A DNA stretch of 64,000 nucleotides, taken from Auanema rhodensis (lineage: Eukaryota; Animalia; Nematoda). The DNA is taken from assembly GCA_964057225.1 (NCBI GenBank), contig OZ059898.1:8370001-8434000 (forward strand), read 5' to 3'. Positions within the stretch are counted from its first letter, which is position 1; the number at the start of each line of letters is the position of its first letter. A model generated the notes under the pieces. It searched no databases. It saw only the letters and a program-made list of their open reading frames with translations, and was not told the DNA's origin. Made by a program: the position numbers and the translations under genes. Positions 39,360 through 56,547 of this stretch are shown one piece after another.

Positions 39360-39469
39360 CTATATGATTAATTTTATAAAATATACGTTAAATTTTCAAA
39401 AATATATGTAGACGTGCATACGTCCGATAAAAAAGAAAAGAAAGAAAAACATTATGTTTTTTTTTTATT
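39360..39469 (-). promoter_or_regulatory. Operon intercistronic region: rnp-7 poly(A) signal, U-rich tract, Ur-like element and nuo-4 trans-splice acceptor
   Basis: AATAAA at 39469-39464; U-rich run; stem-loop GGACGT-ATGC-ACGTCT (39425-39410) followed by TATTTT (UAYYUU, 39404-39399); acceptor catatag about 105 nt after the AATAAA and 2 nt before the ATG. Confidence 0.7.
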
Positions 39470-39671
39470 ATAATAATTGTGATGATAATACATGGAACCA
39501 ACAAGATCATAACAACACACTTATGAACAATCGAATGTTATTAAATGAGAAACTTCAACTTGGACCAAGGTGATACCCCATATCAGACGGCGTATCAACA
39601 CCCTTTACAAACTCACCAAGTTGGTAGGGGAGAGACATAACTTACGGAAAATAACATGAGATATAATAAAA

Positions 39672-41346
39672 TTAATAGCGTCTTTCACGTTGATAATCAT
39701 TTCTTCTATATTCTCCCCCCCCTCCTCCTCCTCGATGATCTCCTCCACCGGAACGATATCCATTATTATAACCCCTGTTGCCGCCATAACCACCTCCACC
39801 GCGACGATCATCACGTCGGTCATCACGACGATCATCTCGCCTGTCATCCCTACAAATTTATATTCATTTAAAGCTTTTCAGATAAAAATTACCTTCGTTC
39901 GCGTTCCCTTGATCGACTACGATGTCGTTTGTCTTTTTCACCACGTTCTTTATCTCTCTCAATCCTATCTTTGTCTCTATTATTATTATCACCTCCCGCG
40001 TCTTTTTCTTCCATAGCTTTTCGTGATTCTCTAGCTCTTCTAGTATCGCCTTTGCCGCCACCTACAATAAATCTATAGATCTAGTAACATATCCTAAATT
40101 ACCTAATCGTCTAGGTAGCCAAGACTTCTGTGTGCGACCTCTTTCATAATCAACGACTAGACGCCTACCATCAACTTTAACGCCATCAGCACGTTTATAG
40201 GCATCTAAAAGATAGACTTACAATTACCCTTACAGTGGGAGTGCCAGTTCTTCGTTAGAATACATATATGACTTCCCGCACACAATGATGCTCGGTAATC
40301 TACTCCCTTTACAAACTTTGCGCGCATTCAAAAATCAACTTACGAACATAAACTTACGAAAGCTAAATTCAAAGGGTGGTTCCGCACATCGAGCCAACTT
40401 ACCCGTGTGCTTACCCGAAAATAAACCCAAAAAATGCAAAAAACATTATGGTATACCTATGTCACTACAAGCGACTTCCAAACATACCATCGCATGAGAT
40501 TGAATTGTTCGAGCATTGTTCTGATTCGTACATTTTTTTCATCTTTTACACAAGAAAATCAGAACAAATGCTCATAACAAACCTATTTAACCATATGCAA
40601 TAGAATAGCAAGCCTCAGGCTTTAGGCTGCAATTAAAAACAATGAATCTCAAAATCGCATCTTACGGGGAAACTTACGAGGAAACAAACCTCAACCGCCA
40701 AAAACCCAAAACATTAAATTTCTTTTAAAAAACTTACTGTGCATTTCTGACTTGTCGGAATATTCAATAAAGGAATAACCGCGAGGTTTACCAGTACTAT
40801 CCTGTACCATCACTAACTGCAAAAAGAATGACTTCATAATAAACCTAACTAGGAAGATACCTTTTTTACTTTACCGTAAGTTTCAAACTCACGCCTAAGC
40901 TTACTTTCAGAAGTTTCATAGTTCTATAATTTCAAAGATAAAACAAGAAAAATAGATTTTCCCACAATTCTCGAGATGAACAGGGTTTTATACGGATCCT
41001 CCGTTGCCTTTGGATTATCAGCAGGATTCCATTGTGCAATACCTTGCTCTACTTTATAAGCTAATAGCTCTTCTTTTTCACGACGTTTTCTTTCCCTTTT
41101 TTGTTCCTTCGTTTCGAGAACAACCTTTGGGGGTGTGTCGGCAGGGTTCTAAGTGATAAATGTTAAATATATATAAAAATTAAAACCAACCTCAAACAAA
41201 TGAACATACTCTGCCACTCCGCCATATCGGATCTCAGGAAGTTTTTCGTTTTTCTCAACTAATAGTGGTATAGGAGGAGGAAGATATTGAATTGGAGGCC
41301 TAGCCTCAAATAATAACATCAAATTGGGAGGCAAGAAAGCAGTCAT
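39672..41346 (-). CDS. rnp-7: U1 snRNP 70 kDa protein (U1-70K/SNRNP70), multi-exon
   Basis: [18 protein letters not shown]; [11 protein letters not shown]; [18 protein letters not shown]; [11 protein letters not shown]; EMH|[39 protein letters not shown]; RD/RE/RGG-rich tail ending ERRY*. Confidence 0.96.
40583..40626 (-). other. Putative poison (PTC) cassette exon / alternative 3' splice site inside the long rnp-7 intron
   Basis: gtttttaattgcag|CCTAAAGCC...AAATAG|gtttgt. The upstream exon ends in phase 1 (A), so A+CC TAA gives a stop at the second codon. Confidence 0.6.
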
Positions 41347-41740: not shown

Positions 41741-44393
41741 ATGATGGACGTGAATGATTCATCTCATCATGCAGATGATGCGAATATTGTAGTAGAAGAA
41801 ATGTATGAAGAAGATGTTGATGGAGATATGGGAGTATGCATTGTATGAAAGCAACATTGTAAATTTGAATATTACAGGGACTTCTTCCTAATAATGATTC
41901 CGTACTTCGCTATGAAGACGATGAACGGAATGACGGCGATGAATACGGTGGTATGCCGCTTGAATTGTATAACAGCATAGTAACATTCAAAAGGTATCAA
42001 GAATTTCAATATGCCTAAAAACTGTTCTATTTTCTTTATAGATCTGGTATATACCCACCAACCTTAAACAGTAGGCAAGACAGAAGTGCTGCAAGTCATT
42101 GGAGGTTTTTCTCTTTCTAGAACATTGATATCTTATGTGTATATTAGGTCTCGCTGTATGAGGTTTATTTTGGCAGAAGATAATGAAACACTGTTGTACT
42201 ACAATCCAACTAGTTCTGTTAATGATCAAGCAAAAGTTGTGGTTAAAAAGGGTGAAGTCAGGCGGGTGCTAGAAAGAATCCATGAACTTATCGGGCATTT
42301 GGGACAGAAGAGAACGTGCTGTTTACTAATTGAAATAATAATTGAACCTAATCTTATTTACAGTCAAATGGTTGTATTAAAAAAGCTACATTGGCGTTCT
42401 GTTAGGCAGGATGTGAAAACATTCATCATGAATTGTTCATTTTGTAATCAGAAGAAATTAGAAGGGAAAAAAATTTTGAAAGCTCCAGTTGATATATCCA
42501 GTTTGTTCCTTTTTCCAGAGTATATAACTTTATTTAATTAAGGTGAACATTTTGGCCTGAATATTGAAGTTCGCAATAAAGCGCCAGGAGATGGTAGTGG
42601 ACAAGATAGATTATCCTTTAGTTTGATAGGGTTACTTGATATCTGTTAACAACATAATATATATTCTGATTCAGATACAATGAGCATGAAGTTCAAGCTG
42701 CTGCAATGAGTCGTATGACAACCTATACTTTCAAAGAAACTGCTCCAGACCTCAGAGGAGCCCGTTATAATCGGCTTCCCAAATCGGAATACGCTTATGT
42801 ACATATATTTTTGAAAAGACATTATGTGAAATTTAAACTTATAGGGCTCTCCTGCATTTCGAAGACAGCCATATATTAAACGCTCACGGTGTGGTAGCTA
42901 CCCCACTAGTTACATATTGCCTTATGCTCCTAAAGGAAATCGAGATGTAATTTTTGTTATAAAACAATTTTTAATGCTTTAATTTAGGAGACAGAGTTCA
43001 TCGTTTTCTCAGACCCAAGAAACTCGTCAGGCGGATATCCAGGAGAAGAAGAGGTGTTCGGGAAATATGAAACTGAGAAATATGAAGAGTTGGTTAACGT
43101 TCACAGTTTCAATGTTAGTATTCTTATTTAAGATTGGTTGATCCTCGCCCAAGTACATCTGGAGATGTCGGTCGCATAGCTGTTGAGCACGATGTTAATG
43201 CTGGGCATTCTAGTGCCTCCCCGCCTGTAGTTAATCGTCCTGGAAGCGTTAGTCACATGAAATGGAATATCTATAATTAGAGTATTTTTTGTTTTAGATC
43301 AAATCTGAACAACCGATGATTCCTAGTATGCCTGTCTATTATGATCCACCAAAGCGAAGTACGTTTAAATTATCCATAAAATCATTCAATAGTTATTCAT
43401 TTTAGCATCTAATGTTGGTAGATTATCATCATCCGGTTTAATATCGCATACGAATAGAAGAAGAAGAAATAAGTTTAATCATGGCCCTACAGGAACCGCT
43501 GCTCGATTTAGTTTAGCTGTTGGAGATGGTGAAAGGCTTGGTAATTTTTAAGATATCCGTTTTTTGTTCATATTTTCAAAATTTCAGATCTCTCTGATCA
43601 TACTGCTGAACTGCTGACACCTTTAGAAGCTGCTCAAAATAGACCTGAATTAATAGGCTTGGCTCCAATCATGTTAATGCCATCAGTTGATCTAGAAGTT
43701 ATACATTTACAGAAAGAGGTTGTTTAAATATATGACTGCCTTTTCTATGTATCTTATTGTAGTTGTTAACAAGACAGTTAAGCATACAAGCGTTACAAGA
43801 GAAAATACTTCATTCGCAGTACGAGTCGATGAGGATTCCAATTGCCAGGTTTTTTTTTATTTTGTTCCCTTATCATTGATGAAATGTCCTTCACTTAATA
43901 TGATTTAATCAAAACTAGATATAATTGTATTTTCACCTTTGATCAGTTAAGATTCAGGTACGAAGAAATTGATCCCCGCGGTGATAGAATACAGCTTCTC
44001 TCTCATGTTGGCCAAAACGTTATTGAGGTCTGTTCATGTTTTTGATTTTTCAAATTATATGACGTAATTGAATTAATGTGTAATGTTTTTTATGACAACT
44101 CAAGGTGAGTCTTTTAATGCAACTTTGTTAAATAAGTAACAAACTTGTAAATATTGTGTGCAGAAAAGTTACTTGGATCTATATATATGTTAACATATAA
44201 TATATATATATATATAGCATCCCATCTCCTGTAACTGAACAGAGTTACAGGGACCACCCATGTGCTCTAATTATATCTATGTAATCTTAAATTGCAGGAA
44301 ACCGTCGAAATTGATCAAGATCTCAACGTTATTGATAGCGATAACGAGCACGATGAAACTATCGATGTGATGAAACGCTTTAATCAAGAATAA
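41741..44393 (+). CDS. Integrase zinc-binding (H2C2) domain protein, K04G7.1-like, multi-exon
   Basis: MMDVNDSSHHADD...; IHELIGHLGQKRT-QMVVLKKLHWRSVRQDVKTFIMNCSFCNQKK is a Gypsy-type HHCC motif; no DDE core or RT; many canonical short introns; acidic C-terminus ending KRFNQE*. Confidence 0.75.
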
Positions 44394-54960: not shown

Positions 54961-56547
54961 ATGCTTTTCTATTTTCTATTATTATCAACTATATTATTAA
55001 TAGGTTTGTTTCATATCTTCTATATTTTATTTTTGTATGATTGTTATAATTTACTATACTAATGTTTGAACTTGAGAAGTACCTATTTTGAACGCAAATA
55101 TAAAATAAATAAATAAATATATATTATAATATAAATTTATTACTGTTAAGTATATATATATATATATAAAATTGTTTTTATTATTTCTTTAAATTCAGAT
55201 GCGGAAAAGCAATGCCCCCGAAATTCCATGTACTTCGACTTTGAGCCTTGTGATCCAAGTCGACGATCTCAATGTCCTTCTGGCTTTACATGCAGGTATA
55301 AATATATTAGTTAATAATTAACTTAACATTCAAAACCATTATAAAATCTATTATATTCATTCTTTAATTAAAACATTATTTCATAGAAGGAGCATGGACT
55401 TAGAAAGACCTGACTTAGAACTATTTTTGTGTTGCGAAAGTGCCGATATGACAGCAGGTGAATGTAAGTGATTTGAGATTTATTATATTTAAGTAACAAT
55501 TATTGAATATTAATCTTATGAATTTAGGGTTTGCTGAAGCTATGATAGCTCCACAAGTTTTTCCACAAGCACCATTAAGTATAATCAAAGTGGTATATAT
55601 AATAGTTAAATAATGTATAAAATATCTTTTAAATTATTTAGTTAAAATTACAATCATTGGATAATAATAATGAATTTCCTCCTGTACATGTTGGAGATGA
55701 AGTTGTTGTTATAACCTTCCCAAATTATGTTACTGGTGTTTTACAAAATGTTGAGTTGAATCAAAATTTCATGACAACTGGATATTATCATGTAATGACC
55801 ATAGTAGGTTAGTCTACTTTCTTGCAACAATACTATACAAATAATCAATTAAATATGTGCTTATAAATCAAAATTTAGATCCGGGATATCGTCCATTCGC
55901 ATTTTTCTTTAACTATAATATTCCTTGTTCACAATCTCCAGTTATTAACTTATTTCCTAATGCTGGTTCACAAACGAATTCAATGCAGCGTTTTCTAACA
56001 TATATGGATAACACGACAACTGTTCCAATGCTTGAATCATGTACGAAATGGATATTTTCTTTGTTTTTGTTCATCACACGACTGCAATTATCGAGCTTTT
56101 TACAGATCGTGCTATGTATGTTGTATTAGTGTTCAGAACAAATAATCCTTTATTCATTCAACAGCAATATGGATATAATGGTAAAAAATAGAAAAAGACA
56201 AACAACCTACAGAAAGCTTCCTGATTTAAGACTTTTCCTACTTAACTGGAGCAGTATTGATGGGTAATTGCACGGACATAACTTGCCTGCTCACAAATAC
56301 CATGTTTGGACGCGAGATTGGTCAACCGATTTCTGGATCCATATTCTATGTGAGTTATTTTTGATCTACATTATATTCCTAATCTGAAAAAAAAGCAAAA
56401 AACTGCTGATAATTATTTGATTGGATATTGCAGATGACGACAAAACGTAGTATGTTTCCAATGAGTGAGCAACAATTTCGTGACAAAGCTGGCAGTATTT
56501 CAGGCTATTTTATAATTTTTTTATTTGCTTATCTTCAGTTGATTTGA
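54961..56547 (+). CDS. Secreted, probably GPI-anchored protein with an N-terminal Cys module (WR1/Lustrin-type) and a divergent PEBP-like domain
   Basis: Exon 1 (54961-55003) signal peptide MLFYFLLLSTILLI|D; CPRN...CDPSRRSQCPSGFTC...LCC; IAPQVFPQAP, YYHVMTI-DPGY, YVVLVF; hydrophobic tail GSISGYFIIFLFAYLQLI*. Confidence 0.7.

Follow-up and report, generated by a model that had tools for sequence, protein, structure and literature searches.

A U1-70K orthologue (rnp-7) was identified on the minus strand of the window, i.e. the whole stretch of 64,000 nt of Auanema rhodensis DNA that was analysed, at positions 39672-41346. Translation of its seven exons gives a protein of 309 amino acids with 72-76% identity to the U1-70K proteins of Caenorhabditis, Diploscapter and strongylids, and the Pfam domains U1snRNP70_N and RRM_1 are present in the U1-70K proteins of these relatives. 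These identities place the organism among the clade V nematodes (Rhabditina) but in none of the genera compared. The borders of exon 4, which encodes part of the RRM, are backed by the RNA junctions 40816/40861 and 40204/40738 (here and below, a slash marks a splice junction). The latter is the canonical junction across a 533-nt intron, and its recovery in all four RNA runs (4/4) confirmed exactly the size and bounds given for this intron in the original prediction, which had also set it apart from much shorter introns in the rest of the gene. This contrast holds for the long intron, but the remaining five introns of rnp-7 measure 41-44 nt each and not 45-60 nt, as had been stated. The features of the intron and of the exons flanking it are listed in Table 1.

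Table 1. Features of the long U1-70K intron and its flanking exons, in the order of transcription (positions are those of the window).
Feature	Position	Strand	Details
Exon 4 of U1-70K	40738..40816	-	RRM part; ends ...SEMH + 1 nt, phase 1; translation and RNA
Regulated intron	40205..40737	-	533 nt; G of GT 40737, G of AG 40205
Authentic donor of long intron	40737	-	ACA/GTAAGTTT
Donor-like triplet (includes pair 1)	40661..40691	-	12-nt period; AG/GTTTGTTT, then GTAAGTTT (40677), then GTAAGATG (40665)
Poison 3' splice site	40627..40635	-	taattgcag/; RNA junction 40626/40738, GT..AG ends
Predicted poison exon	40583..40626	-	44 nt; in-frame TAA at 40624-40622
Conserved weak donor	40576..40586	-	ATAG/GTTTGTT; cut between 40583 and 40582
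Hairpin just downstream of weak donor	40509..40574	-	stable; fold z-score -3.3
Tandem donor pair 2	40398..40414	-	CGG/GTAAGCAC + CGG/GTAAGTTG, 12 nt apart
Tandem donor pair 3	40339..40357	-	TTC/GTAAGTTT + TTC/GTAAGTTG, 14 nt apart
Tandem donor pair 4	40217..40233	-	GTAAGGGT + GTAAGTCT; 12-29 nt upstream of productive 3' splice site
Productive acceptor of long intron	40205	-	tcttttag
Exon 5 of U1-70K	40103..40204	-	NAYKRADG...PRRLG; translation and RNA

The intron is rich in sequences resembling 5' splice sites. GTAAG occurs nine times on its sense strand, with the first base at 40737 (the authentic donor), 40677, 40665, 40414, 40402, 40357, 40343, 40233 and 40221; six of these extend to GTAAGT and five to GTAAGTT. 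The nine GTAAG and six GTAAGT donors reported in the original prediction are thus exact in both number and position. No GTAAG is present on the antisense strand of the 533 nt. Among 20,000 dinucleotide-preserving shuffles of the intron, GTAAG was found 0.74 times on average (maximum seven, none with nine or more) and GTAAGT 0.27 times (maximum four, none with six or more). Elsewhere in the 64-kb window, on either strand, there is no 533-nt stretch with more than three GTAAG.

The eight internal sites (hereafter decoys) form four pairs with a spacing of 12, 12, 14 and 12 nt. Four of the five GTAAG-N4-11-GTAAG pairs of the entire window lie inside this intron, with 0.76 expected for the whole window, and four such gaps under random placement of the sites have a probability of approximately 0.005. 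When scored against the extended nematode donor consensus AG/GUAAGUUU, for which the C. elegans consensus was used, the decoys fit better than the other real donors of the gene; those of its remaining introns read GTTGGT, GTGGGA, GTATCT and GTAATT (twice). The 5' end of nematode U1 is taken here to start AAACUUACCU.

Pair 1 belongs to a donor-like triplet that precedes the poison acceptor by 36-60 nt. At 40661-40685, Tandem Repeats Finder (TRF) reports 2.1 copies of a repeat with a 12-nt period, and the triplet block (40661-40691) shows no positional conservation in the other species compared; pair 1 is a lineage-specific 12-nt duplication. Plain tandem duplication was rejected as the origin of the decoys in general, this repeat being the only one found by TRF. 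In pairs 2-4, the spacers are unrelated to one another, and the positions of these pairs are conserved in other genera. Two donor-like sites in the 3'UTR were also considered as part of the module and were rejected, as most of the other species lack them in their 3'UTRs. A second exact copy of ATAGGTTTGTT lies at 55000-55010 in AT-rich non-coding sequence, which is within chance expectation.

An internal acceptor that brings a TAA into frame had been proposed within the intron, and the reading frame bears this out: an exon beginning at 40626 reads a/cc taa, i.e. Thr-stop. One weak and six strong donor-like sites are located downstream of 40626. The weak donor closes the predicted poison exon and is expected to pair with the 5' end of nematode U1 at -2, -1, +1, +2 and +5 to +8. 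For the U1 5' end given above, mismatches would occur only at +3 and +4.

RNA evidence was obtained from Logan contigs of four runs (X1-X4) of the same organism, all 100% identical to the window. The depths given are assembler word depths and contigs lose rare junctions, so that isoform ratios derived from them are rough. The five small introns are spliced out, with zero depth in these contigs, and so at contig level the signal over the large intron represents neither DNA nor general pre-mRNA. In X1 and X2, the canonical junction 40204/40738 has depths of 142 and 146, respectively, junction 40626/40738 was not assembled, and a contig covering the whole intron (40175-40767) has depths of 46 and 39; the part of the intron downstream of 40626 is contained in this contig. 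In X3, the canonical junction has a depth of 24 and junction 40626/40738 one of 19 (19.3), together with a retention contig, 40597-40767, at 15 and the part 40175-40626 at 45. The corresponding depths in X4 are 30, 12 (11.6), 23 and 43. In both X3 and X4, contig 40175-40626 runs unbroken into exon 5. Use of the poison acceptor is hence followed by a stop two codons on, while the remaining 422 nt of the intron are kept.

Two of the RNA outcomes put forward in the original prediction were therefore found: the junction from 40738 to 40626, in X3 and X4, and intron retention, as whole-intron contigs in X1 and X2 and as partial ones in X3 and X4. The third, a cassette junction from 40583 to 40204, is absent from the contigs of the four runs, the downstream part of the intron staying in, and use of the 44-nt poison exon as a cassette was rejected on this basis; such use may occur at a low level, as in human cells without cycloheximide. 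No junction leaving any decoy, the weak donor included, was found in the contigs of the four runs. Unproductive forms made up roughly 21-25% of the transcripts of X1 and X2, compared with 59-65% of those of X3 and X4, a strong difference in the ratio of productive to unproductive forms between two pairs of samples whose library type and conditions are not on record.

Orthologous loci were searched for using exon 2 as the query, followed by a strongylid fragment, and eleven were compared: two contigs of one Logan run and the loci of Strongylus vulgaris (partial), Cylicocyclus nassatus, C. briggsae, C. auriculariae, Diploscapter pachys, Mesorhabditis belari, Pristionchus fissidentatus, Bursaphelenchus xylophilus and Gnathostoma spinigerum. 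A large intron is present at the same codon and in the same phase in 11/11 of these, its length ranging from 435 to 2406 nt among the nine complete introns. Internal GTAAG occurs 65 times on the sense strand of the orthologous introns versus 11 times on the antisense strand, and most of the introns exceed their own shuffles in GTAAG (P of at most 0.015). Exceptions are C. auriculariae, in whose intron GTAAG occurs internally just twice (P=0.06), and Strongylus vulgaris, whose partial fragment lacks it altogether; the poison exon is kept in both. Matches of at least 8/10 to AG/GTAAGTTT number 46 on the sense strand and one on the antisense strand. Pairs of sites 9-16 nt apart recur, with spacings of 11, 13 and 12 nt in C. 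briggsae, 12, 16 and 13 nt in Cylicocyclus and 11 and 14 nt in Pristionchus, and in others as well.

The decoy sites align between genera while their spacers and flanks diverge (alignment A3). In the same alignment, GTAAGTTT sites align across species; in addition, Cylicocyclus carries an almost unchanged copy of the window's block cggGTAAGcacacggGTAAGtt, and Pristionchus and Diploscapter can be aligned to the window over TTCGGGTAAG. A strong donor-like site adjoins the productive 3' splice site in some of the species, at 17 nt in Pristionchus and 31 nt in Diploscapter. The weak donor is the most uniform element: AT(A/T)G/GTTTGTT is common to 11 sequences, located 40-96 nt past a good acceptor, and T-GGTTTGT is invariant (alignment A1). 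The poison exons predicted in this way are 40-96 nt long and contain an in-frame stop in 9/10 species, among them the two in which the length is a multiple of 3; that of Mesorhabditis causes a frameshift instead. Missing conservation of the donor cluster in related species had been named, next to missing RNA support for the poison acceptor or for retention, as grounds for refuting the original prediction. The cluster, the poison exon and the weak donor are all conserved in Caenorhabditis, Diploscapter, Mesorhabditis, Pristionchus, strongylids and Bursaphelenchus, and the outcome of either check, on RNA and on conservation, supported the prediction.

The intron has been noticed before in C. elegans. 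The intronic ESTs that are the most conserved of that species map to an intron of K04G7.10 (rnp-7) and overlap an RNAz prediction of non-coding RNA, and no decision was made between a new exon and an ncRNA as their source (Shin et al. 2008, PMC2474577). A separate ncRNA gene hosted in the intron (a miRNA, snoRNA or other), with the GTAAG motifs being incidental, would agree with these ESTs, with the hairpin at 40509-40574 and with a weak mir-50-like match inside the intron. This match is the sole one to Rfam, however, and is sub-threshold (E=0.35); no family reached threshold over the intron, and the presence of a known RNA family was rejected. RNAalifold analysis of nine species returned no consensus structure. 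What is conserved consists of splice-site motifs found strictly on the sense strand, and the transcripts over the intron run on without a break into the exons on either side and are spliced at the acceptor that had been predicted. A hosted ncRNA is accordingly considered highly improbable. The hairpin is real in this species, and a masking of the weak donor by it was also considered. GUUUGUU pairs with a downstream ACAAA in several species and the local fold is stable, but the search for a consensus structure across species found none and the pairing probability of the weak-donor motif is not above that of dinucleotide shuffles (mean z 0.29); masking would be at most a tentative reading.

Annotated proteins of other animals also bear on the intron. 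A 177-aa protein annotated in Nippostrongylus ends ...EMS-TLRHDV..., and its TLR... matches the predicted start of the poison exon in Strongylus, Cylicocyclus and C. auriculariae. Truncated proteins that stop just past EM(S/H) or DMH are annotated in Nippostrongylus, Onchocerca, Parascaris, Plectus, Panagrolaimus, several arthropods and Aplysia. With so many nematode and arthropod annotations ending at this point, and with a recurrent C-terminally truncated isoform of animal U1-70K noted in the literature (PMC8211703), the unproductive transcript could be supposed to encode a functional protein of approximately 161 aa (U1snRNP70_N and part of the RRM), acting for example as a dominant regulator of U1 assembly. 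The tails beyond the junction are not conserved, however, varying from 1 to 36 residues and differing in sequence, the truncation cuts the RRM, and what has been conserved is the set of splice signals within the intron, not a capacity to code for protein. Furthermore, C. elegans rnp-7 is listed at gene level as a Class I direct substrate of nonsense-mediated decay (NMD), being up 2.4-fold (log2 1.27) in NMD-deficient strains and enriched approximately 13- to 18-fold (log2 3.7 and 4.2) in SMG-2 immunoprecipitates (Muir et al. 2018, PMC5765348 File S1). A functional truncated protein is thus thought to be very unlikely.

Taken with the RNA contigs, the conserved motifs indicate that the rnp-7 intron is very likely a conserved and used module for unproductive splicing. 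By analogy with vertebrates, it is probably the nematode counterpart of the exon 7a switch of SNRNP70, a negative feedback that would set the level of U1-70K and the U1 snRNP. [quoted passage not shown] 2013, PMC3798272). The unproductive RNA is removed by NMD, which results in homeostasis of U1-70K and U1C (PMC3798272). The account of the human mechanism from which the original prediction started (a PTC-introducing 3' splice site, U1-bound but unused 5' splice sites downstream of it and an unspliced remainder) agrees with that publication.

The window intron reproduces three of these features directly, namely the PTC-introducing 3' splice site, the 5' splice sites that are not used and the remainder that stays unspliced once the alternative site has been chosen. 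The two systems also share the gene itself, the placement of the 3' splice site in a long conserved intron of the RRM-coding part, and one or more weak donors near downstream with strong ones farther away, hardly ever used. That the unproductive RNA is an NMD substrate has been shown in human, and C. elegans rnp-7 is in the NMD-substrate list cited above. There are differences, too. Four sites (A-D) are described for human, whereas the nematode intron has eight internal GTAAG and two GTTTGT-type sites, mostly in pairs 12-14 nt apart, and the earlier expectation of more U1 sites than in vertebrates holds against these four human sites. Two of the nematode decoys precede the poison acceptor, an arrangement for which the human model offers no explanation, and two are placed against the productive 3' splice site. 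Unlike in vertebrate SNRNP70, the weak donor is an invariant AG/GUUUGUU, and the intron is 0.4-2.4 kb long where other introns are approximately 45 nt.

In the mechanism proposed here, the U1 snRNP would bind to the weak donor AG/GUUUGUU, 44 nt past the poison acceptor, and to the array of consensus donors (GUAAGUUU) farther on, and would thereby turn on the poison acceptor by exon definition. Crowding within the pairs (9-16 nt), along with the position of one pair against the productive 3' splice site, may cause the sites to hinder each other and the productive acceptor, leaving them unused in splicing. The unproductive transcripts would be degraded by NMD, be confined to the nucleus on account of their intact 5' splice-site motifs, or both, such that more U1-70K or U1 would lead to less productive rnp-7 mRNA. 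Several observations argue against this scheme. The strong decoys are situated 170-400 nt past the poison acceptor, a long way for exon definition where most splicing relies on intron definition, and a steady-state share of PTC isoforms of 59-65% in two runs is high for a target of efficient NMD. The two decoys that precede the poison acceptor count against it as well, as does the scarcity of GTAAG in C. auriculariae and in the Strongylus vulgaris fragment.

Related arrangements have been described for other snRNPs and genes. The USSE is a tandem of U12-type 5' splice sites that activates an upstream 3' splice site and directs the mRNAs of U11-48K and U11/U12-65K to NMD or nuclear retention (PMC5473595). 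Like the USSE of SNRNP48 and RNPC3, the nematode array would represent tandem 5' splice sites, never spliced, in the gene of an snRNP-specific protein, and recruitment of the gene's own snRNP, activation of the upstream 3' splice site by exon definition and autoregulation are proposed for it by analogy. USSE sites are U12-type and bind U11, whereas those of nematodes are U2-type GTAAGT(TT), and the USSE is a single, precisely spaced pair whereas the nematode intron has several. The intron element may act in a manner similar to the USSE, as an analogue in mechanism without sequence homology, and does not belong to that family. In human cells, RNAs with intact 5' splice-site motifs undergo nuclear retention and decay via U1-70K and ZFC3H1 (PMC9074902). 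Unused consensus 5' splice sites in a polyadenylated transcript and U1-70K as the trans-factor are common to that pathway and the nematode case; the pathway serves quality control of misprocessed mRNAs, and its use in nematodes or for autoregulation is something that we infer here. [quoted passage not shown] Unlike the nematode array, it is a single 9-nt site, lies in a different gene and acts as a silencer of an exon that is essential there. The main text of the paper makes no reference to nematodes.

These systems raise the question of whether the same cis-elements have nuclear detention and decay as their main output, with U1 acting (via U1-70K) on the intact 5' splice sites and the stop codon being a safety net. 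The RNA would then serve as a nuclear reservoir with a detained intron or become a target of the exosome. The retained forms are more abundant than is typical of NMD targets (21-25% and 59-65%, as above), read density over human intron 7 is high even without NMD inhibition (PMC3798272), and U11 bound to the tandem USSE retains the 65K mRNA in the nucleus (PMC5473595). Against this, C. elegans rnp-7 co-purifies with SMG-2 and rises in NMD-deficient strains, which points to some cytoplasmic pool subject to NMD (PMC5765348), and the in-frame stops of nine of the ten predicted poison exons, including both that would otherwise preserve the frame, suggest that the PTC matters. Detention as the main output is regarded as unlikely, and a feedback switch acting through unproductive splicing is preferred; nuclear detention plausibly contributes to it to a considerable extent, in view of how many of the steady-state transcripts are retained forms. 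A more elaborate form of this switch is put forward tentatively, and we would not consider it probable: the array might act as a U1 'counter', in which the occupancy of the donor pairs (9-16 nt) and of the invariant AUAG/GUUUGUU by U1 snRNP containing U1-70K picks the poison acceptor and detains the transcript in the nucleus, with an output consisting mainly of detention and release and less of NMD. A tissue- or stage-switched output of this kind is suggested by the two levels of unproductive transcripts in the paired runs.

The U1 snRNP governs the choice of 5' splice sites and, in mammals, also controls premature polyadenylation and nuclear retention. It is because of this control that the setting of its level matters. 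To our knowledge, feedback via intron 7 of SNRNP70 has been shown in vertebrates only. A search of the available literature on the regulation of nematode U1-70K found just the two C. elegans reports cited above, and no description of the decoy array or its mechanism. The proposed nematode switch follows a known, SNRNP70-like design, with the expanded array of paired decoys as its distinguishing feature. Its presence across rhabditid nematodes argues for an ancient circuit, and the switch would account for both the conserved rnp-7 intronic ESTs of 2008 and the place of rnp-7 among the direct NMD substrates. A genetic model offers a compact version of 0.5-0.8 kb in which the parts played by weak and strong decoys, the spacing of the pairs, U1C, and NMD as opposed to nuclear detention could be dissected by genome editing. 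Should the introns of arthropods and molluscs carry the module, its origin would lie in the bilaterian ancestor, which would make it one of the oldest regulatory elements known to be conserved within introns, with C. elegans providing genetic access to it. The position of the intron is common to all nematodes examined, and the truncated or read-through proteins of arthropods and a mollusc end ...DMH; the switch intron of vertebrate SNRNP70 is presumed by us to occupy the same position as the nematode one (after ...DMH, phase 1).

Based on Logan contig depths, which give rough ratios, unproductive transcripts of rnp-7, the U1-70K gene, make up approximately 21-25% of all rnp-7 transcripts, judged across 40175-40767, in RNA runs X1 and X2 vs 59-65% in X3 and X4 of the same organism, a roughly threefold gap. 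The junction using the poison acceptor, the internal 3' splice site of the regulated 533-nt intron, was assembled in X3 and X4 only, among the four runs. As both the unproductive share and this junction differ between the two pairs of runs, rnp-7 isoform choice may be regulated by stage, tissue or condition.

Upstream of the poison acceptor, three donor-like motifs follow one another at a strict 12-nt spacing, and TRF reports a repeat in the same region with a 12-nt period and 2.1 copies. This periodicity points to the addition of these decoys (donor-like sites without observed splicing) by recent local duplication in the Auanema rhodensis lineage.

Two donor-like sites were also identified in the rnp-7 3'UTR (39611-39645), approximately 30-60 nt past the stop codon and 150-185 nt short of the transcript end, which RNA contigs place at about 39460-39480. 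In most of the other species checked, the 300 nt that follow the stop codon contain no comparable sites. The regulated intron and this 3'UTR each contain one identical copy of a 13-nt sequence, AGTTTGTAAAGGG, and the 3'UTR copy lies immediately 3' of GTG. The similarity extends into the flanks (approximately 21/25 positions); by a rough estimate, about 0.002 such repeats are expected by chance.

Features of the rnp-7 locus and its surroundings
Feature	Position	Strand	Remarks
Donor-like motif triplet GTTTGTTTCCTC, GTAAGTTTCCCC, GTAAGATGCGAT	40661-40691	minus	strict 12-nt register
Hairpin, ~66 nt, 16-bp stem	40509-40574	minus	directly downstream of conserved weak donor; z -3.3
AGTTTGTAAAGGG, intron copy	40305-40317	minus	regulated intron
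Donor-like site TCC/GTAAGTTA	39645	minus	3'UTR
Donor-like site TTG/GTGAGTTT	39616	minus	3'UTR
AGTTTGTAAAGGG, 3'UTR copy	39601-39613	minus	3'UTR
ORF with H..H...C..C pattern	42086-42541	plus	sequence pattern; divergent from rnp-7

The sole Rfam match of the hairpin beside the weak donor was mir-50-like and sub-threshold (E=0.35). For C. auriculariae, Mesorhabditis and Diploscapter, folding likewise predicts long hairpins beginning at GUUUGUU, statistically not above shuffles.

The opposite-strand gene adjoining rnp-7 carries the Pfam domain Integrase_H2C2 in C. auriculariae (L005, 1-308), Diploscapter (L006, 1-234) and Cylicocyclus (L008, 1-9019); with the divergent ORF at 42086-42541, these genes may represent one conserved integrase-domain neighbour of rnp-7, perhaps a domesticated one. 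The flanks of the C. briggsae (L004) and C. auriculariae loci share one gene order within Caenorhabditis, with a SYF2-domain gene followed by rnp-7 and a dNK-domain (nuo-4-like) gene, which fits the operon context assumed earlier for the window.
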